NCBI RefSeq assembly: GCF_001194135.2
Contig: NC_068999.1
Coordinates: forward strand, 32,953,910-33,017,909
Direction of reading: 5' to 3'
Length of the DNA: 64,000 nt
Origin: Octopus bimaculoides
Taxonomy: Eukaryota
Positions 4,723 through 59,411 of the stretch are shown here, in pieces; position 1 is the stretch's first letter, and the number at the start of each line of letters is the position of its first letter. The notes beneath the pieces are model-generated. The model made no database searches. It saw only the letters and a list, made by a program, of their open reading frames with translations, and was not told where the DNA came from. The position numbers and the translations under genes are program-made.

Positions 4723-6079
4723 CGTATACATGCATGTACACACTCACACATATTTATACACGTATATACTAGCAGCTAAGCCCGGTTTCACCCGGTTGGT
4801 TTGGATGATGTGACTGTAAAACCTGCTCTGTGTAAGCATTTGACTTTTTTGGGCACGCTTATGTTAAAAAATAATTTTAGAATGACTTTTTTCTGTCAAA
4901 ACGCTAAAAATAACTGACCAAATCAAAAAATAAACCCAAATACTAAGCAAACAAAGATGAACCATCCCACTTCCATTGCGCACGCACACACAAACACACA
5001 CACACACATTCACATATCCCCCTTTTACATACACACATATTCACAGAGTTGAAGCGCTGTTTGATTTTTATTTTCAGTATACAATTTTCATCATCCCACT
5101 ACCAAGTATGACATCACCCCTTCCTTTCTCATTCAAAAACACAAGAGTATTATTATAGTACATTATCTCTGTAACCATGGGAGCTATGAAAAAAACACAA
5201 AGTCCAGCATCACCACCGGATCATTCTACACATCTGTGTANNNNNNNNNNNNNNNNNNNNNNNNNNNNNNNNNNNNNNNNNNNNNNNNNNNNNNNNNNNN
5301 NNNNNNNNNNNNNNNNNNNNNNNNNNNNNNNNNNNNNNNNNNNNNNNNNNNNNNNNNNNNNNNNNNNNNNNNNNNNNNNNNNNNNNNNNNNNNNNNNNNN
5401 NNNNNNNNNNNNNNNNNNNNNNNNNNNNNNNNNNNNNNNNNNNNNNNNNNNNNNNNTATATATATATATATATATATGGCATAACTTTCATTTGCTTTTT
5501 AGGTGTATAATTCTGTTTCTTGCAATGATGATCTTGTCTTCTAGTACATTCATAAAAAGAAATACAAAAGGAGTGAGAGTGCACAAAATCAGTGTCAGTT
5601 TATTGTTTGCATTCCTCTGCTTTATATTTTTTATTCAATTGATGTTGAAAGTTCTTCAAACTCCCTGGCTGTTCTCCATCTCAGCTAGGCCAGTGTTCTC
5701 TCAACAATACACTCACACACCTGATACTTTATTGAATTTCTTTAATAACTCACTTGTCACAACTGCTTATATCATATTCAAGTAAATACTGCTTTTGAAA
5801 GCAAGCTCCGCTTAAGTTAACAAGCGTTACGACAACAACTTAGGGTCTCTTCTACTTCTCTCTCTCTCCTCCTCTCTCTCTCTCTCTCCACTGATTTATT
5901 GCTGCTATGTAGCAGCTGTCTTTACCACTCTGTGCATTTCTGCAATTATTCCTCGACAACAACTTATGCCTAGTCTTCAATTCCTTCAGCAATTATTACA
6001 GCTCTTCAAGAACTAGCTTGAGCTGGCTTTGCATTTAGCAATAAGCCTCTTGTGTTCTCTCTCTCTCTCTCTGTCTTTT

Positions 6080-6165
6080 TCTCTTTCTCTCTCCTCACTC
6101 TTTCTCTTTCTCTCTCCTCACTCTTTCTCTTTCTCTCTCCTCACTCTTTCTCTTCCTCTCCCTCC
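6080..6165. repeat. 23-bp pyrimidine tandem repeat (~3.5 copies)
   Basis: ctctctcctcactctttctcttt repeated. Confidence 0.8.
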
Positions 6166-6641
6166 CTGTTAATTTCTCCCTCATTATCAAGTTCTCTCTG
6201 TTGAACTAATGATGTCGATGTTTTTATCTCAGGTGGCTTTGACAGATAAGTCATATAACCATGCCACAGGAAATAAAGATAACTTGTGTATTTGCTTATT
6301 TGTACTTGTGTACGTACACACACACACACACACACATTTAAACTAGACACATATGTAAACACATGATGCACATACATTAACACACACACACACAAACTAC
6401 ATACATATGTAAACGCATGATGCACATACATTCACCATGCACACGTGTGTGTGTGTGTGTGCATGTGTGTTTTACAATATTGTTTAATATGAAACACACT
6501 TAATTTTTCCTTCTATATTTATAATGTTCATTTGCGATTACAGTGCCCTAGATTTATCATCATCATTATTATTACTTTAGAAAGACAAAAAAAAAAAACA
6601 AAAACAGACAAATGCATTAACCTTATTTCTTGTTGCTTCAG

Positions 6642-6968
6642 GATTTTTGCCTGTTGATTGTGTGCTTTTAATTTTTGTTGTTTCTTTTACATGGATATTT
6701 TTAAAAAGTACTAAAATATAAAATGCCTGCCGTCCCCATTCTCTCCTCCCTCCCCTGGTAACTCCCTCTACCCATCTTTAATGAAGTTGTGGAAAATGCT
6801 TGAATTCGATTCTGCTATGTATGGAAGCTTCAGGGGCCAGAATCTCCTCTCCCTCAACTCCACCTTCTCTTTCTCCTTTTTCATATTGAATGCAGTTGTG
6901 GTGGTGATGGGTTTTTTTTTAAAGCTTCACACATCTAATAAGTTAGTGCTAGTTATGTTGAGGCACAG
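6642..6968 (+). CDS. Candidate 5' exon of Dlg ending ...MLRH + R (frame open from ATG 6781; nearest ATG 6955)
   Basis: TTAAC (6617-6621) and ccttatttcttgttgcttcAG acceptor (6640-6641). CAG|GTAACA donor at 6969 falls in phase 2 of ORF 6781..6972. It follows a CpG/CT-repeat patch at ~5800-6460. Confidence 0.3.
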
Positions 6969-8118
6969 GTAACAGCATTCAGTAATGGTGTACTTCGTAA
7001 TAAATAGACTTTTTTTTTTATTTGTACAAAATGCCAAAAAATAAATAATAAAAGAAGAAAAAGGAAAATCTATTGATTCCAGTAATTAAGTTTCTGGTCA
7101 TGGATCTCTTCAAATGTTCCTGTGTTGTTAATAATAAATGTCAATATATTTTATGAATATACCACGAACAGACTGTTGCATATGAACACAAACACACACA
7201 CACATTCCTGCCTGCCGCCACTCACTCACCCACTCTCTCTTTTCTATTCTTCCACTTTGTCTTTTTGTCTATCTCTTTCCCTACATTTTCTCTAAAAGTA
7301 GTTATATTAAAATGTCTTGATATTTTCATTGTATGTTTAAGACAATTTTAATTTAATGTGTATTATTCCAAATATCATTTGCTTATAGTTAAAGTTGGTT
7401 GGATTCCAAAATGTGGAAAATGGTGACATTGGCATAAGTTTATTACAAAATAAAAATAAAAGAAGAAATAAAAACAAATAACGGTAAATGAAAGAAGAAA
7501 CAAAAGTGAAAATAATTGACATTTAAACAAGTGTTGGGCAGTGACATTCTTTGAAGAAATATTTCTCTTGATAAAGAAAACCTTCACTGACCTATATGTA
7601 AGACAGCACTTAATCAACTGGACAAAACAACTAAGATATTTCTTTAGATGGACAAGATAAAGATTGTCTATTTAAAGAATTACTGACTTTACCTGCTCAT
7701 TAGTGGAGTTCTAATTGAGCAGTTTTAACCATTTCAACTCCTCTGATCAACATTTTTTCCCTATTATTTGGTTTTTACTTTTATTGATTTATTTTGTTTC
7801 TTAACAAATATATAACTATTATTTAACTCCCTGTCATTGTTTTACAAATATATTACAATTGTTTACTTCCCTTTTGTCTGTCTATATATGTAGAATTGTT
7901 ATCACCATACAGTGATAACATTCTCTTACAGTTTCAGTTAATCATTGAAATGGTTCAGTTAAATAACTGATATTTTCTTATTTTTTGATAAAATAAAATG
8001 GTGTTTGGAATACAGTTTTAAGGATTCTTCCATAATTCTGTAAAGAAAGTTGACATTTGGATCTAAATATACCATCTCACTTGAAACTGCACAGGAATAT
8101 GGGAAATTTTAGGTGAGA

Positions 8119-8375
8119 TGGTAATTGAAGACCAGAGGTGGTCTCAGATGAATTAGTAACTAAGAAACAGAGGTAGTTTCAGGTAAGTTGGTAATTTTAG
8201 ACCAGAAGTGGTCCTTATTTGGTAACTTAGAACCAACATTGGTTTTAGGTAAATTGGTAACTTAGGACTAAAGATTGTTTCAAGTGTATTAGTAACTTGG
8301 AACCAAGGGTGGTCTCAGATGGCAATGTAACTTCAGGCTTGGGGAAGTTGGTGACTGAACCAAGTATGGTTTGAG
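8119..8375. repeat. Degenerate ~35-bp minisatellite (~8 units)
   Basis: Units such as ggtaattgaagaccagaggtggtctcagatgaatt / agtaactaagaaacagaggtagtttcaggtaagtt / ggtaacttagaaccaacattggttttaggtaaatt. Confidence 0.8.
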
Positions 8376-8485
8376 GCATATTGTTGTTGCAGATGTTAAG
8401 CATTTTATATAATATTGGAAGGGATAAGTGAATAGCGACTGGGTTATGGTACCTGAAGTATGTCCAGTAACACTTGTTTATTTGT

Positions 8486-8700: not shown

Positions 8701-11700
8701 CACTGATGCCAGAGATGCCAACAGTAGGTATCATTTTGAGACAGATAAACTGAGGAATAAAAATAAAATTGTTACAATATATTTATTTATTTAGTTAACC
8801 TGTCTGAACAGATTTCGCTACCATTCCAAGTTTTACATAGCTTTCCTCAAGTCCATACAATGGATCTAATGATTTCCTGCTTCTGCTACTCCTGGTATTT
8901 TGCTATGGTGCCCCAAGGGTGATAATAGAACACAAAAGCAGTTGAGCTTTAAATATTTATTATCTCCCCTTTACTGTTTTTTTTTTTTTTAGGTTGTGTT
9001 GTAAGCACTGAATCTACCAATTACACATCTATTGTTTATTGATAGTGGATTTAACTTTCTATTTGTGATTGTTCCAAATATCAGTTATTCTGCTGCTACT
9101 GCTTATATCATGGCAAGAATATGTTCACTAAACCACAATAGCAATATTCTGACAGCACTAGTAAAAAGAACCAAAATCTTACCCTGAGAGTTAAAAAATA
9201 TAGAAAACATCTAGCCAGCTTCCTCCTCTCGTGTAACAACGAACTTGATTTCTTAAAAACTTTCCATCATTTGTTGTCCTCATCTTTTTGTCATGTTCAT
9301 TCTTGTAAGGGTTTGATAAGTTTGGTTTATCAAATTAATGTATCCAAGATAATGTAGTCCTTGCATTTTTAGAATGTAAGATATAATTTGAGGGTAATTT
9401 TGTTACTATTTTTAGCAAGTCAAGTAACCAAGTATATCCCTCCCTGTCTCTGCTTTATTGGAATCATTGTTTAGCAATTAGTATCTCTTGAAGTAATGTT
9501 TCTGACATGTCAGTAACTGTAATCATAGTGATAAACAGAGCAGTTTATTGTATATAACATAGCCTCATACATACTGTGTATAAGATAACCTCTTAGATAC
9601 TATATATATATATATATATATATAATATGATATAGCTATACAGATACTGTATATAACATTGCTTTAGTTAATCATTTAACTGCAAAATTAAATTTCATGG
9701 CTATACCAGTAAGGATGTTAAGAATCTACCAAAAAAAAAGAAATATTTTCTGCAAGTCACGTTGCCTCAATAAACTTGACATAACTTGACAAAAAAATAG
9801 TTAGAAACATGACATTCCTCAACAAAAGATAGAATAGTATATAAAACTGCTATCTTCAGTCAAGGATAATGAAATTTTGAGAGTATATCTGATTTTTGTA
9901 GTAAAACAGTTAAAATGTGATACTGTATATAACACATCCTCAGTTAAGATGTGAAATTCATAGATAATACATGTAACATATAGCACCAATTAAGAAGTAT
10001 TCATGGATAATCTTGCACACCATGTGAACTTGTATATTAATATCCAAAGTTGTTCTTTGTGACACACTTGCTGTAGATCAGTGTTGCATGAAGGGAGTGG
10101 CACTGTTTATATAGTACAAGACTTGTCGTTGACATGTCCTCCACAAGGTCTCAACAAGGAAATAACTTTCATTCTAGCCATTCCAAAGTAACTCTGTTCT
10201 TTTGAGATTCAACTAATTAGGAAATACTTATGGATTCTCTACTGAGTCTATATTGAGCTGTGTTATTGTGTTGGGGAACAGGGGTTATGGTATTTAGATT
10301 GCTATTGTTTGTAGCATCCAGTACTACATTAACTTGGAAGTTATTGGCCCTGGATGTAGAGAGGAGTTGAGTCCACCTACACTGGTTCTTGTAGTATGTC
10401 CACCCACCACTTGTTCTTTGATGGATCCACAGTGAATTCTCCTTGTTTAAATGCTGATGTCTGTTTCTGACTATGTCATATGAAGTTAGTGAAATAATTC
10501 AGTTTTAGCTGTCTTTTCTAACATCAACATCTCTCATGCTTTCTGATTGATAGTAGAACATAACTAATTCTACTCATTTCAATATCAACCTAGTATTTCT
10601 GTCTCAAGTTCCACAACCCTGTTAATACCTTATTCTTCTTTCTCAAAATATTTTTCAAGCAACATTTAAGGTTTGCTATGATTTCACTTCATGTGTTAGT
10701 TTACTGGCCATTAACAACATCTTTATAATCTTTGTTGACAGAAACTTTCAATCATTATTGTATCAAGACACTAATTTATGTATGCAGAACAATTTCCTGT
10801 AAGCTTTCATAATTCTTATCTACTATATATTCTGTGAATGGTGCAGAGTTTGTGTTAAGTTTCAAGAGGTTTTTGAGGGCCAACTGAATATGTGAGAAAG
10901 AAATCTCACTTTGAATATGACAGCAGTCTATTTTGTGCTTCCGTTCTAGATGGTCTGTTAACTATTTTTCATAGCTTAGTAAACAAAGACATAGAATGAA
11001 GTGTAGCAGAATGAAACACCTGCACTGAAATTGAAGTGAAAATCTGTGAATAAGAATTGAACTCATGTTCCTGTGATCCCAGGTTGAATTCCATTGTCTG
11101 TTCCACTAATGTTTATTCCTTCTACTATAGTTACAACCAAACATTCCAGTATGTTTATATATGATAACATTTAGGTGGTTGTTGTGTAATAAGTTATCGC
11201 TGCAACATTTTAACATCATATTTTATCTAACTTACAGAAACAACATTCTTCTTGTTTCTGTCTTTCTTGCACAATTCCAGTCAATCTTCTTTGCCATTGT
11301 CTGTAGTTCTACCCTTTCTCGATAAGCTGATAGAAAAGTTTTCTGGCATTATCTGCTATCTCTTTATGGACAAACCTGTCTTTTGTTTGCATTACAATAA
11401 CTTAAGCGCCTTCTTTCACTCAAACTTAGTTAAACATCTGTTCTGCTTTCACATTTCTTTGTTTTCCCTTTCCCTCCTCACCCCCAACTCTACGGCAGTA
11501 ATGTACTTATGAATATATGATAATGCCTTCACTACCACATAACACCACGTCCTTACCTCTGCACATTAAGGGCTTACTCCCACCCTTTATTGCCAAACAT
11601 CTTAACCACCACACTGCAAGTCCTCACTACCTTACTATGCCACTTCATATCTCCTCTTCCAAGCTGCAACATGTGTCTAATTGCCGCACAATTTATCATC

Positions 11701-11711
11701 ACTGTTGTGAA

Positions 11712-12018
11712 GGCCCGTGGCTCAGTGGTTAGGGCATTCCGCTCACGATCGTAAGGTCGTGAGTTCAATTCCCGGCGACGCGTTGTGTCCTTCAGCAAGA
11801 CACTTTCTTTCACATTGCTCCAGTCCACTCAGCTGGCAAAAATGAGTAGTACCTGTATTTCAAAGGGCCAGCCTTGTCACGCTGAGTCTCCCTGAGAGCT
11901 GCGTTAGGGGTACACGTGTCTGTGGATTGCTCAGTCATTTGCATGTTAATTTCATGAGCAGGCTGTTCCGTTGATCGCATCAGCTGGGACCCTCGTCGTC
12001 GTAACCGACAGAGTGCTC
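11712..12018 (+). mobile_element. tRNA-derived SINE (apparently full length, CpG-rich, so probably young)
   Basis: A box TGGCTCAGTGG and B box GAGTTCAATTCC, followed by ttgtgtccttcagcaagacact and a SINE body. Confidence 0.85.
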
Positions 12019-12889
12019 CTATCATCACTGCTACATTATGCCACCATGCAACATGCCCTCACTACGAAACCTCACAACATTCATGATGTGTGCAAGTTAT
12101 TTATTCTCTAAAAATCATATGTCAACCACTGCACTATCTTGTACATTTATTAAACTTTAAAAGGTAGTCATCTCTCATAAGTTTAGTAAAAGATGATGAT
12201 GTCAGAATAATGTTGAAGTATGTCTGGAGTCATCTCATTTACTGGTTGTATGCAAGAAATGTTATTAGCCATTGATCAATATCTTTTCTCCTCAGTACAT
12301 ACTTACTACTAGTTACTTATTTTAATGTTTTATGTTTAAATAAGTTAATATTAACTTGCTGATGATAGAACACCTGATTTGTACATTTATCAAACTATTG
12401 TTTTTGCTGTTTGTGTAACAGTACTAAATAATTAGTCCCTCCTGAATTATCTATTTCATTTTGTCAACTCGACATCAGAAAGGGCTAAAGACAAGCACTT
12501 TCCTCTTTGGCCAAGCACTCATCAACTTTTTCAAGTTTCACTTGAAAAGGAAGTTGAGGGTGGAGAGGGATGTGTTGCTTTGTAGCAAGTTTGTTGAAAG
12601 GTGGGTGAATGTTGGAAGAATGGCCAGTATGAAAGGACCAATTCTGAGCATGCATCTGTAAACAAAAGAAGGGCTCTTGCCTTATTGTTCAGGCACCTGT
12701 GACTTTTGTAGGTTTTTTCATGAGGTCCTATTGGGAGTTTTAAATTGTTTAATTTTTAATCGTTATATATACTGTTTACATGTAAAACCCATTGTATCAT
12801 CCTGTTTTTGTCTTTTATGTTGTTGTATGTCTCTCGGTAATTTTATGTAAGCCCTTGTGGCCAATAAACAAATTATTATTATTATTATT

Positions 12890-13320
12890 ATTATTATGAG
12901 TGGTGGATTGGCAGAATTTTTAAACCGTTGAGCAAAATACCTTGTGGTATTTCTTCTAGTTCTTTACGTTCTGAGTTCAAATTCTGACAAGGTCAACTTT
13001 ACTTTCATTCTTCTGGGATCAATAAAGTACCAGTCAAGTACTGGGTCAATTTACTCAAAATAACCCCTCCTCTCAAAATTACTAGCCTTGTGCCTAAATT
13101 GAAAGCAATTATTGCAAAATTGTTAGCACACCAAACGAAATGCTTGGCAGTATTTTGTGTGTCTTTACATTCTGAGTTCATTTTCCGCTGAGTCAACTTC
13201 ACCTTTCATCTTTTTGGGGTTGATAAAATAAGCACCAGTTGAACACTGGGGCCAATGTAATCAACGTATCCCCTCCCCCAAAACTGCTGACCATGAGCCA
13301 AAATTTGAAAACCTGATTAT
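12890..13320 (+). mobile_element. (ATT)n-tailed SINE array (~2 copies)
   Basis: Repeated ttctgagttcaaatt..ctttcatc..taaa.taagtaccag motifs separated by (ATT)n. Confidence 0.8.
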
Positions 13321-13329
13321 TATTATTAT

Positions 13330-13890
13330 TATTGAGTGAGAGAGCAGTGCATGCCATCACAGTGACCCAGGAGTACAAATATATGAAGCCCAATATACCC
13401 ATCTGATAAGAACACCAGGCACACACATCACAACCATATGTGCATGACATGGTCATCTCATATCAAGATAAACAGCACATCAGCTTGCAGGTGGGACCCA
13501 GTTAGAATGTTTTTCAGGTTGAGTATCCCATCCTGTTCAAAGGTCCCTGAATAAAGGTTGCTTCAGGATGTTGAATGAAACACCTGTGTTTCCAGAGGTG
13601 AATTATTCAAACCCCAAAAGAATTCCTCTCAGCACATGGCTATGATGCTCCCCCACTATTTCTGCTTGTGATCAGAGATGCACATATCATTACCCACAAA
13701 GGGACATGCTCAACTAGTTATGGTCAAACAATTGACAAGCAAATCTGTGGTATTGAGCAGAATATTTGCTGTAGCCCCATGTTTTACTCTCCAAGACAAA
13801 ACATGTACATGGTAATACTCCTAATCAGCTAACATCAGAAGACATGAGAGCCACTGTCTGGTACCGCATCAGGGCAGTTATTATTATTAA
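13330..13890. mobile_element. Unclassified ~560-bp insertion embedded in (TTA)n on both sides
   Basis: Bounded by ttattattattattatt (~13315-13333) and gttattattattaa (~13877-13890), and splits a SINE array. Only one copy is in the window. Confidence 0.4.
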
Positions 13891-14620
13891 GGTGGCGAGC
13901 TGGCAGAATCATCAGCACCCCGGGCAAAATGCTTAGTGGCATTTTGGTGTCTTTACATTCTGTGTTCAAATTCTGTCATGGTCGACTTCGCCCTTCATCC
14001 TTTCAAGGTCAGTAAAATAAGTTCCAGTTGTGTATTGGGATTGATGTAATTGACTATCCCTCTTCTCCAAATTTCAGGCCTAGTGCTTATAGTAGAAAGG
14101 ATTATTATTATTGTTATTCCGCGGAGTTCGACTTTACCTTTCATCCTTTCTGGGTCGATAAATTAAGTACCAGTGTAACACTGGGAGTTACGTACTAAAC
14201 TAGTCCTCTCCCCCAAAATTTCAGGCCTTGTGCCTTTCGTAGAAAGGATTATTATTACTGAAGGTAGCAAGCTGGCAGAATCATTAGCATGCCAGGCAAA
14301 ATGTTTAGTGGTATTTCACTCATCTTTACATTCTGAGTTCAAATTCCACCGAGGTCAGCTTTGCTTTTCATCCTTTTGGGGTTGATAAATTAAGTACCAG
14401 TGAAACACTGGGCTTGATATAATCGACTTGTTCCCTCTCCTCAAATTTCAGCCCTTGTCCCTTTAGTAGAAAAGATTATTATTATTATTCTGCAGAGGTC
14501 GACTTTGCCTTTCATCCTTTCAGGATCAATAAAGTACCAGTGAAATACTGGGGTTGATGTAATCAACTTCTCCTCTGTCCTAAAATTTCAGGCATTGTGC
14601 CTATGATCGAAAAATTAGTA
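13891..14620 (+). mobile_element. (ATT)n-tailed SINE array (4 head-to-tail copies, some 5'-truncated)
   Basis: Unit ggtggcgagctggcagaatc..aaatgcttag..gagttcaaatt..ctttcatccttt..aagtaccag..agtagaaaggattattatt recurs four times. Confidence 0.85.
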
Positions 14621-15679
14621 GTAGTAGCAGTATTTGGTGGTGCTTTGTTTCTTTAATAAAAACCAACTTTATATGAAGGACCTGGTTCCTAACGAAGAAA
14701 TAAATCTCCATTGCTGGATGTGTGTGTGTGTACATATGCATACATTGTATGCATGCATTTGTATGCGTGATATTGAATCAGGAATAATGTGTTGATAATG
14801 AACGATACAGAGAAATTGTTTTTTCTTTTGTTTTTCATTTTGTTGGTTTCTTGCAAGTAAGTCGAAGTTTTAAAGGAGATATTTCTTATTGAATCAAAAC
14901 TGAAATCGATCTGTGCATGCTCACATGTACACACAAACACATACACTCATCATATATGTAAAATATCGCACACATTGAAATAGATTCTTGCATATATATT
15001 TTGACTGAAATAATCTAATCTCTCGCACTCTCATTTTGGCAGGCAGACATACAAATGCAGCATCACACACACTCATACACACTTGTTCTTGCAAAGATAC
15101 ATATGCAACATCTCTCTCTCTCGCTCTCTCTCACACATTTGCTTTTTCTTAAAGTGACACACACATACACGTTCAACATTACTCTCACACACACACAAGC
15201 TCCCCTCCTGCCTTCTCACATACCAATATAGCATCTATCGATCCTCTATTGGTTATTTTGTTGAGATATGATGGATGACTTCACGCTGCCCTGCCTGTCA
15301 CCACTCCCACCTCCTCCATCACCACTGTCTATCACTATTGTACACTGATCTCCGCATCCATCTGCCAGCCTCCTTCTCCCTGGGTCTGTTGTCATGGTGT
15401 TGCCCGTCTGTGAGTTCTTCACATTAACAACAACCACAATACTGATTTACATAATGGCTTAAAAGCAAGGTTTCAACCTCCCTCCCTTTCTCCCTCACAC
15501 CACTCTCTTTCATTGCTTTTTACCCTCTGCCTATTATTATTATTATTCCTACTAAGTTTATTGTTATTATGATGTTTATAGTTATGGTTATTGTGGACTT
15601 TATTGTTATTATAGTTTTTATTACTATTTATTGTGCCTAAAATTAGAAACAATTAAAAATTATTATTATTATTATTATT

Positions 15680-16490
15680 AGGCTAGTGGATTGGCAGAAT
15701 TGTTAGATCATTGGACAGACTACCTTGCAATATATGGTTTTGCCCTTTATATTTTGGATTCAAATCCTGCCGAGCTCAACTTTGCTTTACTTCCCTCCAC
15801 CACTCAAATACTCAGGTTGCCATAATTGACTCCTCCTTCTTTCCTTATGCTTATGTTTGAAATTATTATTATTACTATTAATATTAAGTTTGCAAGCTGG
15901 AAGAAATACTTAGCGGTATTTCTTCTCAGTTCAAATTCTGCTGAAGTCAACTTTGCTTTTCATCCTTTCTAGGTCGATAAAATAAGTATCAGTTGAGTAC
16001 TGAGGGTCAATGTTATCAGTTTACTCCCTCCCATGAAATTGCTGGTCTTGTGCCAAAATTTGAAACTATTGTTACTATTATAGTACCAGTAGAACACTGG
16101 GGTCGATGTAATCGACTCCTCCCTTCCCCCAAAATTGCTGCCCTTGTGACAAAATTTGAAATCATTATTATTATGACGATGATGAAGGTGGTGAACTGGC
16201 AGAATCATTAGCACTCCGGTAAAAGTCTTCTGGCTCATTATGTTCTGTGTTCAAATGCTGCCAAGGTTACCCATGCCTTTCATCCTTTCAGGGTGAATAA
16301 ATAAGTACCAGTCAAGTACAATGCAATCAACTACTCCCCACTCCCTCAAAATTGCTAGCCTCATGCTAAAAGTAGAAAGAATTATTATTATTATGAAGAT
16401 GATTAGCTGGCAGAATTGTTAGCTCATCAGACAAAATGCTTAGCGACGTTTCTTCTAGTTCTTTACATTCAGAGTTCAGACTCTGCCAAA
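15680..16490 (+). mobile_element. (ATT)n-tailed SINE array (~5 partial copies)
   Basis: Same motifs repeated with (ATT)n spacers, abutting the Tx1/L1 remnant. Confidence 0.8.
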
Positions 16491-16604
16491 AAAAGGTGTT
16501 TAAAAGGGCCTGTTAGAAAACATTCACCAGTAGAGAAGTCTGGAACATCTGGGCTTCTCAAAAATCAAGGTGAGTAGCCTCCTCTTTTTCTTTCTCCAAC
16601 TAGC

Positions 16605-18964: not shown

Positions 18965-20230
18965 GATTAAGGCATCGAGCTGGCAGAATCATTATTGCAC
19001 CAGGCAAAATGCTTAGTGGCATTTCATCCTATTTTATTTGAATTCAAATGCTGCTGAGATCAACTTTGCTTTTCATTCTTTTTGTGTGTGAGGTGGGAGG
19101 TCAATAAAATAAGTACCAGTTGAGCACTGAGGTCAATGTAATCAACTTGCCTCTTGCTCTCGAAAAATACTACCCTTGTGGCAAAATTTGAAACCATTAG
19201 CACGCCAGGTGAAATGCTTAGTGGTATTTCGTCTGCTGCTACGTTCTGAGTTCAAATTCCACCAAGGTCGACTTTGCCTTTCATCCTTTCAGGGTTGATA
19301 AAATTAGCACCAGTTACACACTGGGGTTGATGTAATCAACTTAATCCCTTCCCCCAAATTTGAGGCCTGGTGCTTCCAGTAGAAAGGATTATTATTATTA
19401 TTATTTCAAATTTTAGCACAAGGCCAGCAATTTTTGTGGGAGGGGTTTAGTATATTACATCAACCCCAGTGCTCAAATAGCATTTGCTTTATTGACCTGG
19501 GAAGGCTCCATTAAGTACCCATTGAGCACCAGGGTTGATGAACTAACCACCTTCCCATAAAATTGCTGGCCTTGTGCCAAAATGTAAAACCATTATTATC
19601 GTTACGAAGGCAACAAAATGGTAGAACTGTTCACACACTGGACTTAGCAGCATTTCTTTCAGCTTTACATTCTTTGTTTAAACTCTGCCAAGGTCAACTT
19701 TGCCTTTTATCCTTTCAGAATTGATAAAATAAGTACCAGCTGAGAACTGGGATTGATGTGATCAACTAACCACACTCCCGTATAAAATTTCAGGTCTTGT
19801 GCTTATAGCAGAAAGGATTGTTATTGGAGTGGTGAATGAGAATCAGTGGAGCATCAGATAAAATGCCTAGCAATATCTGGTTGCTTTTTTTTAAAGAATT
19901 GTTATCATGCCATGCAAAATACTTAGTGACATTTCATTTGTCTTTATGTTCTGAGTTCAAATTCCACCAAGACCAACTTTATCTCTCATCCTTTTGGGGT
20001 CAATAAAATAAGTACCAGTTGAGTACTGTGACCAATTTTATTGACCCCACCCCCTGAAATTACTGGCCTTGTACAAAAATTTGCTATTAGTATCTTTAAC
20101 TTGTTGAGTTCAAATCTTTCTGGGGCCAGCTATGCATTTCATTCTTTTGTGGTTAATAAATGTCCTGGGATCAATTTCATTGCCTGTTTCTTCCTCGCAA
20201 AATTTGAACTCTTGTACCTCTATCGGAAAT
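18965..20230 (+). mobile_element. (ATT)n-tailed SINE array (~6 copies, mostly +, one short reverse piece ~19400-19500)
   Basis: Same family motifs. The copy at ~19200-19400 is close to the apparent consensus. Confidence 0.8.
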
Positions 20231-46257: not shown

Positions 46258-46425
46258 TGTCTGTTAACTTATCTTGGATTTGGTTGCTATTATTATTTTC
46301 AATGAACTGATAAGGTGGGGTCTTTTGTAATATTATCGTATAGTTGTCCATGGTAATTGGATGGGATGGAGAATGGATAAATACTATCTGGGAACTGATA
46401 TGAGCTATGAAAGTATGAATGGAAG
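46258..46425 (+). CDS. Candidate start-codon-containing exon of Dlg (5'UTR plus MGWRMDKYYLGTDMSYESMNG + R; CDS 46361-46425)
   Basis: GCTAAC branch point (46226-46231), pyrimidine tract and cacAG acceptor (46256-46257). In-frame stops at 46265 and 46328, then ATG 46361 open to AG|GTGTGT (donor 46426, phase 2). CpG cluster immediately downstream (gcgcgc, acgtt, tcga). Confidence 0.5.
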
Positions 46426-46569
46426 GTGTGTGTGTCTGTGCATGCGCGCGCATACGTTAAAATAACGTAATTGTATTAGCTAACTGTTGTCTAGGAAATG
46501 TCGAAATGAGTATAAAGGTTGTTAGTGCTTTTAGTAGTAAAAATTGTTTCTGATTTAGGTACAGGTCCT

Positions 46570-47250
46570 AAAATTTAAGGGCAGGATTATATCCACTCCC
46601 TAGTACTTTTACTTGATTTTATTGACATTGACCTTGGAAGTATGAAAAGCAAGGTGAGCCTCTGTGGGATTTGAACTCAGAACGTAAAGACGGATGAAAT
46701 GCTGCTAAGCATTTTGCCCAGTGTACTAACGATTCAGAAAGCTCACCACCTTAATAATAATATTAATAATAATGGTTTCAAATTTTGGGAGAGGGAGTTA
46801 GTCAAATACATAGACTCTAGTGCTCAACTAGTACTTATTTTATCGACCTTGAAGGAATGAAAGGCAGAGTCAACCCCAGCAACATTTGAACTCATGAAGT
46901 CAGAAGAAATGCTGCTAATCATTTTTTCCACCAAGGCAATGATTCTGTCTGCTTGACACCCTTTCTGCCCTAGGTGTCAGGAAGACCCTTGGCAAGAAAT
47001 AGAAACAGAATTGAAAGATGATGATAATGAAAATAATGATAATAACAATAATTTCTGATTTAGATGCAAGATGTGCAGTTTTCCAAGACAGGATTAGTTG
47101 ATTACATCAACCTCAGTACTCGACATCTTTGTTTTATTACTCAAAAAGGATGAAAGACAAAGTTGACTTTGGTTGGACTTGAATTCAGAACTTAAAGAGC
47201 TAAAAGAAATACTGCATTTTTACCTGATGCACTAACAATCAATCAACCAA
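46570..47250 (-). mobile_element. (ATT)n-tailed SINE array, reverse orientation (3-4 copies)
   Basis: gaactcagaacgtaaagacggatgaaatgctgctaagcattttgccc and tagtacttattttatcgacc are reverse complements of the family motifs. Confidence 0.8.
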
Positions 47251-48257: not shown

Positions 48258-49499
48258 ATGAGAGGCTTAATTAATAGCAACAGGATGGTTTTTACAACCA
48301 ACAAAATAGAATAAAAAGTGTGATTCTCTTAGTTTCTGGAACATCTAAATTGTTGAAATAACCAGTTGTTTGCATTTACCATGCAGCTACTGAACGTGTG
48401 CGCACACACACACACAATGAATTTTGCTTTACAGCTGCTGATTTCAGACTCAGCCTCATTGTATGGCACAATAGATGAGTGTCTTCTGCTACAACCATGG
48501 GCTGACCAATGCCTTATAAGCACATTTGGTAGGCAGGACACTATACAAAGCCTCTCTTGCACATGTATATGCATTTGTCTGTGTGAATGTTTACGTTCTG
48601 TGCTTGAAATCTGGATGGTGATGTTTCTTGACACTTTCCTGTTGATAAAATTCTCTAGTAGCTAAGCGTTTTAAAGGCAAGTGAAAACAAGTGCTAGCAA
48701 CCAGAAGGGCATCCAGCTGTAAGGCAAAACCTCAATAGTATTTATATAACCCATGCTAGCATGGAAAAACAGATGTAAAACAGATGAATGAATATCACTT
48801 CATAATGAGCTGCCTATTAAGTTGATGACATGTGAAACATTTGATAACTCTTTATTGTGATATGTTTTACTTGCTGAATGCTATTGTAATTAGGATTGGC
48901 AGTTAATTAGAGTAGAAATTTAGTTTGTAAGGAGGTGCGGGTGAATGTGGTTGTTATACTCATATTTGTATATTGAAGAGGAAATAGTTTCTGTCATTTC
49001 AATATCTATGAAGTCCAATACCATTGTATTCCAATTAATAATGAAGGGTTTTTTTTAGGCCATTGGGATACAACTTCTAATTTATGAGCTAGGTGGCAAA
49101 ATAGGATAATGTATCATATTGAGACTTTTCCCTCTCAAATGTTTGTCGGTGTGAGTACTTCAGTAATGGTGAACTATGTTATACATTTAGTCCTGTGGAG
49201 TTTGTAGGTTCAAATAAAGATAGAATCTATTGTGTTTTGAAAATATTCTGAGCTGATTTGCTGCTTTTGTAATAAAGTCTGAATAGGACAGGATTTATTA
49301 ACATCATTAATAAAATGCATTGGCTTCAGCTGGAAATCTCATTGCTCAACTTACAGAAGAGCTATAAATTATAAAATTCTAACAAGAACCACACTTACTT
49401 GGTCTTGAAACATGAACTGATCGTTTTTACATGGTCACAAAGACACTGAATTATAAGGAGGAAGTGGGTAGTTGTGAGTTGATAATTTATATTATTATT

Positions 49500-49940
49500 A
49501 TTAGAGCTGACAGAATCGTTAGCATGCCAGGCAAAATGCTTAGCAGTATTTCATTTGCCACTACATTCTAAGTTCAAATTTCGGCAGGGTCAACTTTGAC
49601 TTTCATCCTTTCGGGGTCAATAAAGTACCAGTTGAGTATGGGGGACTGGGAGGGCATTGAGTAGCCCTCTTCCTCCTAATTTCAGGCCATGTTCCTACAG
49701 TGGAGAGGATTATTATTATTGGGATTATTATGTTATGCAGCAAACTGGCAAAATCATTAGCATGCCAGACAAAATGCTTAGTGACATTTCATCTGGCTTT
49801 ACATTCTAAGGTCAAATTTTACTGAGTTTGATTTGCCTCTCCTCCTTTTGAGGTCAATAAATTAAGTACCATTTGACCATTGTGGTCAATATAATCAATT
49901 AACCCTCTCCTACAAAATTTCTATTGTAGAAAGGATGATT
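49500..49940 (+). mobile_element. (ATT)n-tailed SINE pair
   Basis: Two tandem copies beginning gagctgacagaatcgttagcatgccaggcaaaatgcttag. Confidence 0.8.
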
Positions 49941-50640: not shown

Positions 50641-53327
50641 AAAACTAAAGTGATGTTAGTGACAAAGAACAAAAGGATTGAGAACTCTTGGTACTAAATG
50701 ACATACACCATTGTTTTTTTCTATCCATATATATAACTACAGCAGTAGCATAAGTTCATGTTATGAACCTCAGATCAATAATTAAACTAATTTTAGCTTT
50801 CAACTAGAATCTAAAGATTTCTTTGATTAGTACCTGACTCAGACATCATATTCTTCCTTCCTTTCTCTGCATATCATGCCAATTAATTTTTTTGAATTTC
50901 ATGTTTTCCCTTTTTTCTCTTCATTTTGAAATAGGCACCAATTCTATTTAATCTTCTCTTTTCCTATTTACCAAATTGTTCATGAAATTTTTGCAATTTT
51001 CTCTGCCCTTGTTTTTTATTTTTTTATTTTTTTCTCTCAAACCCATTAATTCATCTCCCTCTTCTTTGCACAACTCCTTCCTATGAATCATTCACAAATT
51101 AAATTCCTTCTAACGTAACAAAAATTCCAGATAATTTCCTTGTCTAATTAATTGTAACCACCTCCTCCTCCTCCTCCTTTCTCAAGTGCTACTGATACTG
51201 CATTTTATTTTTTTAGTTACATTTATTTATGTCTTCTCTAAAATCTTCAGTCCTTCCCTTGTCTGCTACCAAACATTATTCATCATCACTTGCTGTCTAA
51301 TGTCTATGTTCCGATGTTGCCATCGTTATCTGTGGAAATTAGAAGGAAATTAAGGAAAATATTTTCTGCTTTGTAGCATTCATTTACCTTATTTATAAAA
51401 TGCAATTGCTTGTTATTTTATAACATTCATCTAAATTATTTATAAAAAAGTGACATTCTGTTATTTCATGAGTGTCTGAAGTATCTCTGTTACTCCATAC
51501 TCTATAAATTATTTTAAAACTGCTTAATAAACAAAAATATTAAAAATGGGACACTCACACCACTGCCACACTAAATAAAAACATTCAATACCCCACCGCT
51601 CCATCATGTGATGTAAATTTGATTATTTCAAGTTTCACAATTGAATAATTCTTTGGTTAATATAACCTTTACAGTTTTAAAACACAGGAGTATATCACCT
51701 GCTTACACAATATATGTATGATTACTCGAGAGTGAGAGGTGTACATATACATGTGTCTTGGACACTGGTATGGTTGAGTTGTTATTCGGCTTGCTTTGCA
51801 ATCATGTGGTCTGGTTCCAGATCCTGTGCCCACTGCATCACATCTTGTTCAAATATCTGTTACTTTGACCATGGATTGACCCCAAAGGTTACCAGTGAAG
51901 TTAAGTAGTATGAAACCGTAGAAACCCTCATATGGATTGTGCTTGTATTTCAAAGGTCCAACCTTACTGCACTAATTCTGCTTAAGAATTACATTTAGGG
52001 TATATATGTCTGTGGAATACTCAGACAATACTTACACAATAATTCATTAAGTAGGTAATTTAGTTAATGAAGCAACTGGAGTGCTCATTAATAAAACAGA
52101 TGTAAGATCTGTGTGTGTGTGTACGCATCTATGTGTATTATGCTTTATTAAAACATTGAGCCCAGCAATATGTGTATCTGTGTGTGTGCATCTATTGCAT
52201 GTGTATATGTGAATGTATTTGTGTGTGTCATCATTTTACATCATGGATTGTCAAGGTCTGCATCACCTTGCACACACATCAGAAGAGATACTTTGTTGTG
52301 TATAACTTGTAGTGTGGACTACTTGTTGATTCTTGTGCTACTGATACTGGTGTGGAGGACAAAATGTAGCCTTTCTTGTACACACTTCATCTGATTCCTG
52401 TTGTATCCACTCAGTTTCACAGCTCATCTGTCATTTGACAACATATCACAACCAGCAGATTGTTTATTTGATTTCTTTCCAGCCTTCACATATCTTCTAC
52501 AGTCAGTGTTTGTGTTTTACTACTATGTAACATTGTACTTTGTACATAAATATCATACAATTTGCTCATTCTTTCAAAGAAAGAGTACCCTTATGCCAAT
52601 CTGAGGTTATAAACCCCTTGGATGTTTTCTACCTATGCTGGCTGTTTTGCTTTTGGATCATTTGATTCCACTGCTTGATAGGTCCCCAAGATAGTGAAAG
52701 CTGTCAACTTCTGAAGATTTGAAAGGATTTATTCCAACAGTGAGTGGAACTGCTACTCTATTTCATCTGCTACATGCAAAATCATTCTTCTCTGTCAGTC
52801 TGCTTGTGCACTCATAGTTTACATTTGTTAACGTGTGTGTGTATTTATAACATGAACTGAAGTAAAGATATCATCAAAAGAATGGTGGTTATTTATATTC
52901 TAGTTTAGAATATGGTTCAACCTGTTGAGCCATAACACAGCACCAACTGAGATGAGAGAGGGTGGCAGCTATAAAAATTCAGCCACTAACCTTGTTCTAT
53001 TTTGACTGTAAACATCATTGAAACTTTCTACCCACAGCTCTTGCACCATAGATTATAAATATTTCAATATTCTAAATGATTGTGTTTACACTAGCGTTAA
53101 TAAATACACAAGCACATTGATACTTACCATTGCCACTTAATTTTAAGTATTTGATATTACTTCAGGTATCATGTTTTGCAAACTTTATTCAACCATTATG
53201 TCAAAGCATTCCTTGGCTACGTTCTCTCAGCATTTTCCAATATGTGTGTACACATGCGTGTGTGAGTTTGCAGGCATAGTCATGTGCTTAACGAGTTCAT
53301 TTTCAGCTTTGTGGTTCCTGGGTTGGT

Positions 53328-55278
53328 TGAAGTACTAGTCCACTACTAGAGTCAAGTCTTTTCTTTCTTCCATTCTTTCTGAAGGAAATTAGCTATGGTC
53401 AAACCTGGATAAAGATGGGTTCTATCAAGTCTAAAAATGCCAAGAGTGACAAGAGTTTTAACATTGTCTTTACTAATGACATCAACTGTTGATGATCACA
53501 AATAGGTGGCAACACCAGTCACAGTTAATCTTAAGGTGCTAGTTGATATTGTAGTGACATAAAAATAAAATGTGCAAGTCTGGTAGTTTAGGAGATTACT
53601 TTCAACTTTATGGTCTTCCTACAATTCATATTGATGGATTGACTTCACTGACATCTCTCAATTGCAGTGCGTTTATATTCTAGCAAAGAAAGAAAAAAAA
53701 ATCTGTTTTCATCTTTCTACAGACTTAAATATAGAAGTCATGGTAAGGAGATATCAGATATTACCAGGATTATGGCAATAACTGATATATATATATGGTG
53801 TGTGTATGTATATATATATATATATATATATNNNNNNNNNNNNNNNNNNNNNNNNNNNNNNNNNNNNNNNNNNNNNNNNNNNNNNNNNNNNNNNNNNNNN
53901 NNNNNNNNNNNNNNATCACTAAGCAGTGTTTAGGCATAAGCAAAAATTAGGTAAGTTAAAATATGTTTGTGACATATCAGTCTTGAGTGGCAGATAATAG
54001 AATATATATGAACCATTTATATATATGTTTCCATTTATAAAAGTATGTGTGTGTGTACATATATATATTAGTTTGTAAATATGTGCATATGACTGTCTGT
54101 GTTTGTGTGTATGTATATTTCATTTTGATCAAGTCAGTCTTGCTTGTTGGGGCACAGGGTCTTCAGACCACACACAACCAAGTATGCATACAAAAAATAT
54201 ACAAAGGTGCACACACACACACACACACACGTGTACACTTATATATACACAGGCAAGTACATACTTGGTGAACATGTGGCAATATCTCTTCCTTCATATA
54301 TATATGCAAAATTTAGGTTAGTCAAAATATGTTTGTGACGTATTTCAAATGCTAAAAGGCAAATACACTGCAGTGAAAATACCCCGTTTGTTTAGTGTTG
54401 CCATCTATCAGGAATCCCAGACATCAATGTATCGAGTTCATTGACTCTTGTCATGGGATGTACCTAAGAGAGGCAACTCTGAACAAACTTATAAAGCAAC
54501 AGCTTTATGTAAAATTCAGTAAACACGTTGACTGATTTACACTAGTAGATTGCCCATTTGAGGGAAATAACAAAATGTTAGTGCTATTGATAAAAGTCAA
54601 TAAACTCAAACCATCAATGTCTGGGATTCCTGATAGATGGCGAAACTGAACAAACCTTTGCCATAAGATGGTGACACTAAACAAACCTTTGCCATAAGAG
54701 AGATATTTTCACCATGGTAACTGTACTGTATTTACCTGTTAGCAGTTGAAATATGTCACAAACCTATTTCAACTAACCTAGTTTTTGCTTATGCCTAAAC
54801 ACTGCTTAGCGATAACATTTCATTTTATATATATATATATATACACACACAATATATATATATCAGTTATTGCTATAATCCTGGTAATATCTGATATCTC
54901 CTTACCATGACTTCTATATTTAAGTCTGTAGAAAGATGAAAATAGATTTTTTTTTTCTTTCTTTGCTAGAATATAAACACACTGCAATTGAGAGATATCA
55001 GTGAAGTCAATTCATCAAACATGAATTGTAGGAAGACCATAAAGTTGAAAGTAATCTCCTAAACTACCAGACTTGCACACTTTATTTTTATGTCACTACA
55101 ATATCAACTAGCACCTTAAGATTAACTGTGACTGGTGTTGCCACCTATTTGTGATCATCAACAGTTGATGTCATTAGTAAAAACATCAATGTTAAAACTC
55201 TTGTCACTCTCCTCCTGAATTCCTTAAGTTTCTTTGTTACATAAACACAACAACTGCATTTAAGGCTTACTGTGAGCA

Positions 55279-55341
<63 letters not shown>

Positions 55342-55613
55342 TGTATGTGTAGGTGAAATAAACATCAGAGATGCTTTACCCCATGCAGAGACTGCAGGGG
55401 CTGTTCAGAGGTTTTGCAAGCTCTTCTTAGAAATATTAACCCTTGGACACTCAGCTCTTTGCTAGAGTCATAAAGGTCCATTGTGGCATATGGCATTTTG
55501 GCATTTTTAGACTTGATGGAACCCATCTTTATCCAGGTTTGACCATAGCTAATTTCCTTCAGAAAGAGTGTAAGAAAGGAAAGACTTGACTCTAGTAGTG
55601 GACTAGCACTTCA
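53328..55613. repeat. Large nested inverted duplication
   Basis: 53328-53443 pairs with 55498-55613, 53444-~53815 with ~54835-55209, and 53915-53976 with 54751-54813. The arms differ by scattered substitutions and small indels. Confidence 0.9.
54306..54788. mobile_element. MITE-like element with long imperfect TIRs at the centre of the inverted duplication
   Basis: gcaaaatttaggttagtcaaaatatgtttgtgac...gccatctatcaggaatcccagacat pairs with atgtctgggattcctgatagatggc...gtcacaaacctatttcaactaacctagtttttgc. There is an internal ~30-bp direct duplication at ~54649-54699. Confidence 0.7.
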
Positions 55614-57329
55614 CTTATTCCCAAAACAAGGAAAGGCAAAATGACCACGGTAGAATTTAAACTCTGAATACAGAAAATGAGCAATTATCACAAACTAATC
55701 AATCCAATCTTCTAACAACTCTGCCATAACGAGGTTTTGTGTTTCCCTCCACTGCAGAGCACACTGGACAAATATCTTCTACCATTGCATCAGGTCAACC
55801 CAAGCTGTGAATGAAATTAGGTGTCCAGAAACTGTATGTTAACCTAGCAGATGAATTTTAACTACAATTCAAATGGCTGCCTCTTGCACCCTTATTACAC
55901 CTCTTGATTACATGCCTATGGGACACTCTGCTGTTTATATTATAATTCAATGAATAGGTTGCACTATACATTACTAAAAGGAGATGATTTCTCTTTATAC
56001 CTCACAAAAGAAAATATATACACTGGTACAACTGTGTGTTCAACATTGGTTAATGGTACTGTGTTGTAGAGGTCATTTGGCTGCAACTCACTGCTGGTCC
56101 AGCAGACAAGTGGCCAGACCATTCCAGTCCTGGTGTACTTGTCTTTCATTCAAACTTGGTGTATTGATAGCTATATTCTCATATATATCTTTATTCTTTT
56201 AAAAACAATAATGTAATTTGAGGATGTTGCTGCTACTATTTCTAGTAGGTTGAGTGACCACATTGAAACTCCCTCATTAGCTTCTTTGCCATTTGTAAGA
56301 AGACATAGAAATAAGGTGAACCAACACTAATGTTTTTTACCATGTTGTCGTAATGATCCCGCATCAGTTTAATACCTTGATAAATATAAAAATGTATGTC
56401 ATGCTTTTAAAAATAAACAACTCATTTTATTTTATTGTTTTATTAAACTAATTATGGATTTCAAAATGTTTTTATGGATACACTTAGAATAATCTATGAT
56501 GTACTTTGTAACTGCTTACAATGCTGGTTAAATTATATCATGATGTTGAATGATTTACAATGAGCAATATCTCATGACCTGCCGGTAGAAAAACATTGTC
56601 CATGCCTGCAGTAGGTTATGATTTGAGAATTTCGTTACTGCTTCTAACAAATCAAGTAATTGGTGTAGAAGCTGGTTATTGATATTGATGGTGTTGGATT
56701 GGTAGAAGAGTTGTATTGTATTATTTAGTTATGCCTCTTCACACTGTAAAATGCTGGGTGTCACTTCAATCAAGTAGGCCCTTCACTTTTAAATTTACGT
56801 GTTTGTTCCAGTGTAGAAAGTGTTGTTGTTGTTTGGTGCATGGAGTATTTCTTCCTGAATTACTTGATTTTTTTTTTTTTTTTCCACCTACAAAGGGCTT
56901 CAGAATATTTAAATGGCCACCCAATTACATGAGAAAAAAAAGATTCATCCTTAACTATTTTATTGTGTACATATGTTTTTGAAAAAGATCTATTTTGCTT
57001 TGTTTAGTGATTCAATATGTCTATCTGTGTAGTAGTTAGAGAAGGTGTTAGCCACAATAGAGATAACTGTGAATACATCCTCCTTCTCAAAATGTCTTGT
57101 GACCACATAAACGGATTTTCAAAAACTGACAGGCACAGTTACAAAGACAATGATAAATGACAATAACAACTGATCTTTTGCTTGTATTGTGACATGGAAT
57201 AACTACATGCAAAATGAAAAGAGAGCTTCTTGTTCAAAGAATTTAGCCAAGAAAGAGCAAAGTAGAAAGAGACATTTCTCTGTTTTACAAAAATGGGAAT
57301 ATTTTTATTTGTCCTTGAAAGGGTAGTTT

Positions 57330-57800: not shown

Positions 57801-58319
57801 CAGCAAATGATTATGACTACTGTTTATACCACACCACCACCAATTGCAGCTTTATTAATAGTCATGACACTTACTGATGAGGGAAGGGATTGAAATGACA
57901 GCATGGTCTTCCTTCAGCACATCCTCTTGTGATGGTGGAGAGAAAATGATACATGAAGTAATATGGGAGGATCAAGGAGAGGTAGCAAGGAAAAGAAAAG
58001 AAGGACTCAAAAAGAGATTGTAAATTGAAAGTACATAGGTTACTGGAAATTCCTTGTCGAAGAGATCTCCACCCACAAGGCGAGAATAAATTTCACAGCT
58101 AAATAATTATAGATGGTTGATGAAAACCACACAAACTACCTAATAAGAGCTAAAGGAGAATTGCCTGCAGGATGTTGGAGACCTCATGATTTGACTTTGA
58201 TCAAAGATTCTCTTGAGCAATTTTAAAGGGTTCAATATAGAAGCTAATTGAAGCTAGAGGTGGGCAGAGTCATGGGGTACTCTGATCATACTTAAGTGGT
58301 TGCTTCTTGTCCCTTTGTG

Positions 58320-58708
58320 AATATGTTTGTGCCATGGTCAGAATTGCTTTTCTTCATTTCAGGGATGAAAAAATTAAGTACCAACCAATTACTGGGGTGA
58401 AACAAAATCAACTGACCCTCTTCCCTTGAAATTACTGGCCTTGTGCCAAAATTTGAAGCCATTATTTATTTATTTGTTATTATTATTAATACGCCAGGCA
58501 AAATGCTTAGTAGCATTTTGTCCATCTTTATGTTCTGAGTTCAAATTCCACTGAGGTCAGCTTTGATTTTCATCCTTTCGGGGTCGGTAAATTGAGTACC
58601 AGTGAAACACTAGAGTGGATGTAATCGACTGGTCCCCTCCCCTGAAATTTCAGGTTTTGCACCTTTAGTAGAAATTATTATTATTATTGTTATTGTTATT
58701 CTTCTTCT

Positions 58709-58771
<63 letters not shown>

Positions 58772-59200
58772 GAAGGTGGCAAGTTAGCAGAATCATTAGG
58801 AATGTTGAGCAAAATGCCTAGCTGTATTTCTTCTGGGTTTTTACATTCTGAGTTCAAATTCCTTTGAAGATGGTTTTGCCTTTCATCTTTTCAGAGTTGA
58901 TAAAATAAATACAAGTTGAGCGCTGGGGTTGATGTAATTGACTTATCCCTTCCCCAAATATTGCTGGTCTCATCCTAGAATTTGAAACTATTATCGCCAT
59001 CATCATTATTGAGTGGCAAACTGGCAAAATCATTTGAGCATAAAAAGAAATACTTTGTGATATTTGTTGTGGCTCTTTATATTCTCTTGCTTAGCCCAAC
59101 TTTGCTTTTCATCCTGCCAAGGCCAATAAATTACACTACCAGTCACATAGTGGTATTAACTACCCCTTCTTTGTGTCTGGATCTGAAATCATTATTATTG
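58320..59200 (+). mobile_element. (ATT)n-tailed SINE array ending immediately upstream of the PDZ3-exon branch point
   Basis: About 4 copies with a (TAA)n(TTA)n tract at ~58700-58770. The last tail (attattattgttgttgttgctgctg) abuts TACTAAT at 59219. Confidence 0.8.
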
Positions 59201-59218
59201 TTGTTGTTGCTGCTGTTT

Positions 59219-59254
59219 TACTAATTTCTCCATTCTTTCTTCTTATAATTTCAG
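59219..59254 (+). promoter_or_regulatory. Branch point (TACTAAT) and polypyrimidine tract / 3' splice site of the Dlg PDZ3 exon
   Basis: TACTAAT at 59219-59225, followed by ttctccattctttcttcttataatttcag, ~30 nt upstream of the acceptor AG. Confidence 0.8.
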
Positions 59255-59411
59255 AGAACCAAGAAGAATAGTTCTAAACAAAGGCTCGACTGGTCTAGGA
59301 TTTAATATTGTTGGTGGTGAAGATGGAGAAGGGATTTTTGTTTCATTCATTTTGGCAGGGGGACCTGCCGATCTCAGTGGAGAGCTTCGACGAGGTGACC
59401 AAATACATTCG
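59255..59411 (+). CDS. dlg1: Internal coding exon of a Discs-large (Dlg1/SAP97/PSD-95 family) MAGUK; N-terminal part of PDZ3 including the GLGF loop
   Basis: Manual translation: A|GAA CCA AGA AGA... = (R)[52 protein letters not shown], nearly identical to vertebrate DLG1-4 and fly Dlg PDZ3. It is flanked by a pyrimidine-rich ttcAG acceptor (AG 59253-59254) and a G|GTAAGT donor (GT 59412-59413). Length is 157 nt = 1 + 52 codons, so it enters in phase 2 and exits in phase 0. Confidence 0.97.

Follow-up and report, generated by a model that had tools for sequence, protein, structure and literature searches.

The scaffold gene Dlg of Octopus bimaculoides raises the question of whether a promoter within one of its introns gives rise to a shortened scaffold protein. 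We addressed it in a stretch of 64,000 nucleotides (assembly GCF_001194135.2, contig NC_068999.1, positions 32,953,910 to 33,017,909 of the forward strand; hereafter the window, with positions counted from its first letter), which holds the 3' portion of an octopus Dlg intron more than 59 kb long, together with the first exon of the PDZ3 domain, at which this intron ends. A preliminary description of this stretch had proposed an array of internal promoters and variable 5' exons that would all be spliced to this one PDZ3 exon. Only one of the three proposed start exons is supported, and there is no promoter array. For the supported exon, we infer a chain of three steps: the CpG island at 22.3–26.0 kb would act as an internal promoter, its transcript would be spliced from a donor at 24520 to the acceptor at 59255, and translation from the ATG at 24492 would yield a protein of 484 amino acids that comprises PDZ3, SH3 and GK and lacks L27, PDZ1 and PDZ2. 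We put the probability that this island-driven short isoform is real at roughly one half (0.5). A short Dlg product of this kind is already predicted by NCBI, and the isoform class is known from mouse Dlg2.

The exon at which the proposed transcript would enter the common part of the gene is the first exon of the PDZ3 domain, at 59255–59411 on the forward strand. It has 157 nt (ttcag/A GAA CCA AGA AGA ... CAT TCG/gtaagt, the slash marking the exon boundary here and below), contributes a single A followed by 52 residues, and is preceded by a polypyrimidine tract and acceptor at 59225–59254 on the same strand (ttctccattctttcttcttataatttcag). As the preliminary description had held, it is entered in phase 2, its first base filling a split codon, and it is left on a clean codon boundary. 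This assignment rests on the splice sites, on a match to the Pfam PDZ family (PF00595, E about 1e-10) and on identity to known Dlg proteins, which amounts to 87% with the PDZ3 domain of PSD-95 and to 100% with the Dlg proteins of O. sinensis and O. bimaculoides over EPRR...QIHS. The full-length isoforms of O. sinensis, O. vulgaris, Argonauta hians and, in its newer annotation, O. bimaculoides have the same residues as the window across the exon; upstream of it, they read ...TPRPLT(D/E)PDSP, and after it the annotated octopus proteins go on with SVNGIDL. Genomic read-through open reading frames (ORFs) of many other animals, vertebrates included, stop at the same two boundaries, with entry one base ahead of EPR and exit past ..(L/H)S, both of which are found in the window; the boundaries of this exon are therefore ancient. 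For these comparisons, Octopus proteins were retrieved with the exon padded by random residues, since the homolog search discards targets longer than about 1.75 times the query; short unpadded queries matched short genomic ORF fragments only.

The coding part of the supported candidate exon lies at 24492–24520 on the forward strand (ATG ACA CTA CCG ATG AAG GCC GTC ACG AG/GTAGGT) and encodes MTLPMKAVT followed by the split codon AG. Its donor (GAG/GTAGGT) scores 10.3, and joining it to the A at 59255 gives R-EPRR in frame. The sequence is compatible with a dedicated ATG exon whose predicted splicing to the first PDZ3 exon preserves the frame, and the predicted product has a counterpart in RefSeq. 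The older O. bimaculoides models XP_014780561-67, of 477–496 amino acids, consist of PDZ3, SH3 and GK only, and one of them, XP_014780563.1 (P0358; disks large homolog 2-like isoform X3, 484 amino acids), starts with MTLPMKAVTREPRR, which is the product of 24492–24520 joined to 59255. Both the N-terminus of this model, MTLPMKAVT-R-EPRR, and its PDZ3 exon are identical to what the window predicts. The remaining short models start with MYKSVRNTKKKEPYYYDSRIPREPRR, an N-terminus that the window does not encode. The accessions of these short models are not mentioned in the papers searched, and the assembly collection contains no entry for the ORFs of the window, those of the island included, or for the old RefSeq product. 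Donors that are stronger than that at 24520, or nearer to the PDZ3 exon, occur by chance at 36344, 43683 and 46425; since these were passed over, the annotation of 24520 seems to follow more easily from aligned reads than from ab initio completion.

The location of the candidate exon points in the same direction. The window is strongly depleted in CpG dinucleotides (median observed/expected ratio, o/e, 0.19) and contains a single CpG island, a candidate internal promoter at 22300–25950, which spans about 3.6 kb or about 6% of the intron and holds about 95 CpG at an o/e of 0.6–1.1. Within it, GC content peaks at up to 0.52 at 23150–23760 or, more coarsely, 23.3–23.8 kb, where GCA, GCT, GGA and ATG trinucleotide runs are found on the forward strand, and the coding exon sits mid-island, about 0.7–1 kb 3' of this peak. 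Trinucleotide runs such as GCA, GGA and ATG are frequent in 5' untranslated regions (5'UTRs); the GC peak resembles a 5'UTR or core promoter and may be a non-coding first exon. It also includes a minimal frame, ATG AG/GTGGCT at 23611–23615 on the forward strand, whose in-frame splice would give M-R-EPRR from a weak donor (score 6.5).

Why such an island would persist in a CpG-depleted intron may be understood from DNA methylation. In O. bimaculoides, some genes carry 5-methylcytosine (5mC) in their bodies, and a large class of these genes is unmethylated at the transcription start site (TSS) and promoter (PMC9476566). The Dlg gene body around the island is presumably methylated in the germline, and because the TSS and promoter are unmethylated in many methylated genes, an unmethylated internal TSS would look like this island. 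Judged from sequence only, a CpG island at the candidate 5' exon would be compatible with a TSS free of methylation, as described for octopus genes (PMC9476566). We rejected a transposon origin of the island: it has neither long terminal repeats nor terminal inverted repeats, no copies elsewhere in the window and no membership in the repeat families of the window, and it holds no domain-bearing ORF according to Pfam.

The island is the only one of four supposedly CpG-retaining patches that proved to be genuine. The patch at 5.8–6.5 kb is near background (o/e 0.12–0.53, with 1–4 CpG per 250 nt), that at 14.8–15.4 kb lies within a cluster of tRNA-derived short interspersed nuclear elements (SINEs), and that at 44.8–46.5 kb is at background save for a short (CG)n run directly 3' of the donor at 46425. 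Short (CG)n/(GC)n microsatellites at 22948–22961 and 46441–46452 raise the local CpG o/e, and the latter explains the apparent CpG enrichment beside this donor.

What, then, of the other two start exons? Three ATG-initiated frames with AG/GT donors at 6968, 24520 and 46425 are indeed present and encode the peptides attributed to them. The first, at 6957–6968 on the forward strand, encodes MLRH and ends in AG/GTAACA (donor score 7.4); the third, at 46361–46425 on the same strand, encodes MGWRMDKYYLGTDMSYESMNG and ends in AG/GTGTGT (9.5). That three or more internal promoters with variable first exons of their own all feed the constant PDZ3 exon has some appeal, in that all three frames are in phase and give R-EPRR, the junction residue of other molluscs and vertebrates, that a second annotated short N-terminus (MYKSV...) is encoded somewhere outside the window, and that octopus Dlg does use alternative first exons 5' of PDZ1 (O. 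sinensis isoforms X9 and X10). Against this stands the number of such frames. We counted ATG-initiated phase-2 donors on the forward strand of 1–59254 with a generic donor matrix, using first-order Markov sequences as a control, and obtained 34 at a score of at least 6 (35.1 +/- 5.6 expected), 17 at a score of at least 7 (19.3 +/- 4.3 expected) and 8 at a score of at least 9 (5.2 +/- 2.2 expected). Arg is found at the junction in 12 of the 34 frames. The other phases and the reverse strand behave alike: at a score of at least 6, the forward strand has 49 donors in phase 0 and 31 in phase 1, and the reverse strand 54, 44 and 55 in phases 0, 1 and 2, respectively. The candidate frames are thus at the level expected by chance.

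Further observations speak against an array as well. Neither 6968 nor 46425 lies in a CpG island, and the CpGs near the latter come from the (CG)n run. When each candidate was compared with the other two together with 600 nt of its upstream sequence, no common sequence or promoter motif emerged, and no match exceeded 14 nt (E >= 0.37). The peptide of the third candidate is found in no database protein among targets of up to 130 amino acids, and no annotated isoform starts with MLRH or MGWRM. The frames with donors at 6968 and 46425, in which an ATG, an open frame and a GT coincide by chance, do not stand out from about 30 others of this sort, and the array has become a very improbable explanation. 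The idea of Dlg proteins without L27 and PDZ1-2 that arise from internal promoters survives for 24492–24520, which combines the sole island with the RefSeq match, and is lost for 6968 and 46425, which have neither annotation nor island.

For the third candidate, we also considered that it might be a relic, or an alternative version, of the exon for the hinge between PDZ2 and PDZ3. An AG at 46342–46343 opens an 82-nt stop-free stretch (46344–46425) that ends in AG/GT, and its peptide contains YLGTD, which we take to be the PDZ2-PDZ3 linker motif of PSD-95. The motif is absent from protostome hinges, the Pfam family PDZ_assoc does not match, and in a comparison with 49 Dlg hinge sequences, many control frames outscored its best match of 10.4 bits. 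Moreover, an exon of 82 nt, a length not divisible by 3, would shift the frame after a phase-2 hinge exon. The Pfam and hinge-sequence comparisons effectively refute this origin, to which we assign hardly any probability.

The more serious competitor to an island-driven isoform is that nothing functional lies 5' of the PDZ3 exon in the window, that the short RefSeq isoforms are annotation artefacts and that the island is unrelated to them. We consider this explanation a real contender, albeit the weaker one. It would require that a 5'-incomplete Dlg model on a fragmented assembly received its start from a small ATG exon or from rare cryptic splice reads, and that the island is an enhancer, a promoter of a non-coding or antisense transcript, or unmethylated repeat-rich DNA. 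Several observations weigh on its side and against the island-driven isoform. XP_014780563.1 is a computational prediction from a fragmented assembly, and in the protein clusters examined, short isoforms are confined to the old O. bimaculoides set: no PDZ3-first isoform is found among the annotated proteins of O. sinensis (11 isoforms, X1–X11), O. vulgaris, A. hians or the later O. bimaculoides annotation (v2), which has a single Dlg product of 878 amino acids. The preliminary description had suggested a check on whether the short peptides are kept in related species; the annotated proteins of O. sinensis, O. vulgaris and A. hians give no sign of this. In-phase frames that run from an ATG to a donor are plentiful by chance, as described above.

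The start codon itself is a further difficulty. The Kozak context of the ATG at 24492 is weak (C at -3), and an upstream ATG at 24365–24367 on the forward strand has a better one (G at -3). The latter opens an overlapping out-of-frame ORF, which passes the donor at 24520 in phase 0 and, once spliced, would reach a stop 16 codons after entering the PDZ3 exon. This upstream ATG would compete with that at 24492 unless the transcript start or an acceptor lies within 24368–24491. If a non-coding exon in the GC peak were used, possible acceptors at about 24451, 24479 and 24488 would bypass it, although this is speculative.

Doubts also attach to the island. Octopus transposons, too, are largely unmethylated (PMC9476566), so an unrecognised repeat or an enhancer could likewise retain CpGs, and any transcript driven by the island may be antisense or non-coding instead. 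A CpG-rich patch at 11620–12100 on the forward strand is a young tRNA-derived SINE copy with retained CpGs (o/e 0.7–0.8), an example of how a recent insertion alone can produce a CpG-rich patch in this intron. What speaks against an artefact is that the predicted exon falls within the one true island, in about 6% of the intron, that this island is without repeat hallmarks, that nearer and stronger chance donors were not picked, and that two different short 5' ends are annotated. To our knowledge, the NCBI pipeline annotates differing 5' ends only with alignment support, which we count against the artefact explanation.

The island-driven isoform has a parallel in mouse Dlg2 (PSD-93), where a non-coding first exon, zeta-a, and an ATG-containing one, zeta-b, are spliced onto exon 15, which is common to all long isoforms, and where the first exons eta1, eta2 and 15a further downstream give rise to an SH3-GK-only protein; these zeta and eta isoforms are supported by reverse transcription PCR (RT-PCR), rapid amplification of cDNA ends (RACE) and immunoblot (PMC6389146). 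As we read this description, exon 15 would correspond to the first PDZ3 exon, although the paper does not say so itself. In mouse, and as predicted for octopus, dedicated first exons far 3' of the main promoters are joined to a constant mid-gene exon and yield N-terminally truncated scaffolds; the zeta form begins with a non-coding exon, next to which comes a small one with the ATG, and the boundaries of the vertebrate PDZ3 exon are those of octopus. The two cases differ in that the mouse isoforms are backed by RT-PCR, RACE or immunoblot, whereas the octopus isoform is a prediction with a computational model and a CpG island behind it. Furthermore, the eta form has no PDZ domain at all, and the N-terminal peptides have no sequence similarity to the octopus one.

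Other systems offer further comparisons. The vertebrate DLG2 variants alpha, beta, gamma, delta and epsilon arise from several promoters or first exons upstream of PDZ1 (PMC6389146). Likewise, the O. sinensis isoforms X9 and X10 (P0353 and P0236) have first exons that start with MILTCAVD... and MGTTFGRC... and are joined to VDFEQDWEYEE 5' of PDZ1. Here, too, several first exons converge on one constant exon, but they join before PDZ1, keep all three PDZ domains and, in the octopus case, come from exons outside the window. The variable exons of clustered protocadherins, to which the array had been likened, are large, paralogous and arranged in tandem, each with a promoter that carries a conserved element. 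Only the abstract scheme of several first exons that feed a constant exon is shared; the octopus candidates are tiny, unrelated in sequence, present in chance-level numbers and accompanied by at most one promoter-like island, and they display none of the protocadherin features tested (paralogous exons, a promoter per exon, an excess over chance). In Aplysia unc13, a family of intronic promoters yields N-terminally truncated isoforms (PMC9282427). This is likewise a molluscan synaptic scaffold gene with intronic alternative promoters (PMC9282427), yet it belongs to another gene family, and its isoforms are supported by a transcriptome. Predicted PDZ3-first proteins of 467–532 amino acids also occur in other taxa and may be fragments. 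A human DLG3 isoform that starts at REPRK, which the preliminary description had mentioned, was not found in the papers searched.

The second short N-terminus, MYKSVRNTKKKEPYYYDSRIP (MYKSV...), is not encoded in the window, not even at the level of 4-mers. A partial look-alike at 35591–35610 was rejected as chance-level (tblastn E = 3.9). The surrounding 35569–35610 on the forward strand is a 42-nt, AG-bounded open stretch (LILLCSLYYYDIP) that ends in AG/GTATAT in phase 2 and, if used, would form an in-frame cassette; the YYYD--IPR at its end is similar to the ..EPYYYDSRIP-R of the other short N-terminus, probably by chance. As to the junction residue, long cephalopod Dlg isoforms have Pro ahead of EPRR (..DPDSP/EPRR, split codon CC+A; proteins P0237, P0361, P0240, P0289 and P0308), and other molluscs and vertebrates have Arg at the same junction (..SR/EPRK, ..IPR/EPRR); Arg would return in both predicted short octopus isoforms. 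We therefore entertain, as a bolder and rather doubtful extension, that octopus Dlg has at least two genuine internal promoters, the island described here and one further upstream that drives MYKSVRNTKKKEPYYYDSRIP, both of which would yield PDZ3-SH3-GK scaffolds that restore the ancestral junction Arg, in parallel to the zeta form of mouse Dlg2.

The remainder of the window is consistent with a single intron. Searches of the 64 kb with tblastn, using PSD-95 domains and octopus proteins, revealed no exons for PDZ1, PDZ2, the hinge, SH3 or GK, and matches of hinge 5-mers at 2250, 7294, 11532 and 24193 were rejected for lack of extension. Positions 1–59254 on the forward strand are therefore part of one intron of more than 59 kb, between the exon for the PDZ2-PDZ3 hinge (...TPRPLTDPDSP, outside the window) and the PDZ3 exon, and they contain SINE copies, microsatellites and foldback repeats. 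The whole Dlg gene covers about 700 kb in O. bimaculoides v2, compared with about 598 kb in O. sinensis and about 302 kb in A. hians, and no genes nested in Dlg appear in the gene listings of O. sinensis or O. bimaculoides v2. Rfam and tRNA scans of the window gave no matches.

Among the repeats, the cluster of tRNA-derived SINEs at 12900–16500 (families D4–D14, from a repeat comparison) is accompanied by further copies at 19000–20250, 46627–46850 (inverted), 49480–49920 and 58400–59010, and two SINE copies lie 250–850 nt 5' of the PDZ3 acceptor. A MITE-like inverted repeat of 147 nt (36312–36458 and 36592–36738, with arms that are 90% complementary and separated by 133 nt) includes the donor at 36344, which outscores all other chance phase-2 donors of the intron. 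A larger inverted repeat (53289–53822 and 54826–55652, with arms that are 85–98% complementary) encloses an assembly gap at 53832–53914 and represents a foldback element or, alternatively, a local misassembly. This gap is one of six runs of N, all of which fall in microsatellites of the (CT)n or (TA)n type or adjoin them; the PDZ3 exon and the candidate exons are untouched. As the gaps are intronic, the reading frame across them is irrelevant; the continuity of the sequence across them is not provable, and the inverted duplication around 53832–53914 may reflect such a misassembly.

In practical terms, this analysis provides one precise junction, 24520^59255, and removes two false candidates; its significance is modest. 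Octopus and Aplysia each have one Dlg1-4-type gene, and vertebrates have four. Alternative-promoter isoforms have been proposed as a route by which synaptic scaffolds diversify without gene duplication (PMC9282427). The role of PDZ3-SH3-GK (PSG) as a supramodule of Dlg, on which the preliminary description had built, is well documented in the literature: it binds partners and drives phase separation (PMC9490041, PMC7533695). If the island-driven isoform is real, a Dlg protein made of PDZ3, SH3 and GK only would keep this supramodule and lose the PDZ1-2 tandem for receptor binding as well as the L27 domain for multimerisation, and it could therefore modulate or compete with the full-length scaffold. 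If, beyond this, there are indeed two internal promoters, PSG-only Dlg would represent either an isoform class of ancient bilaterian origin or one invented convergently in two lineages with complex brains.

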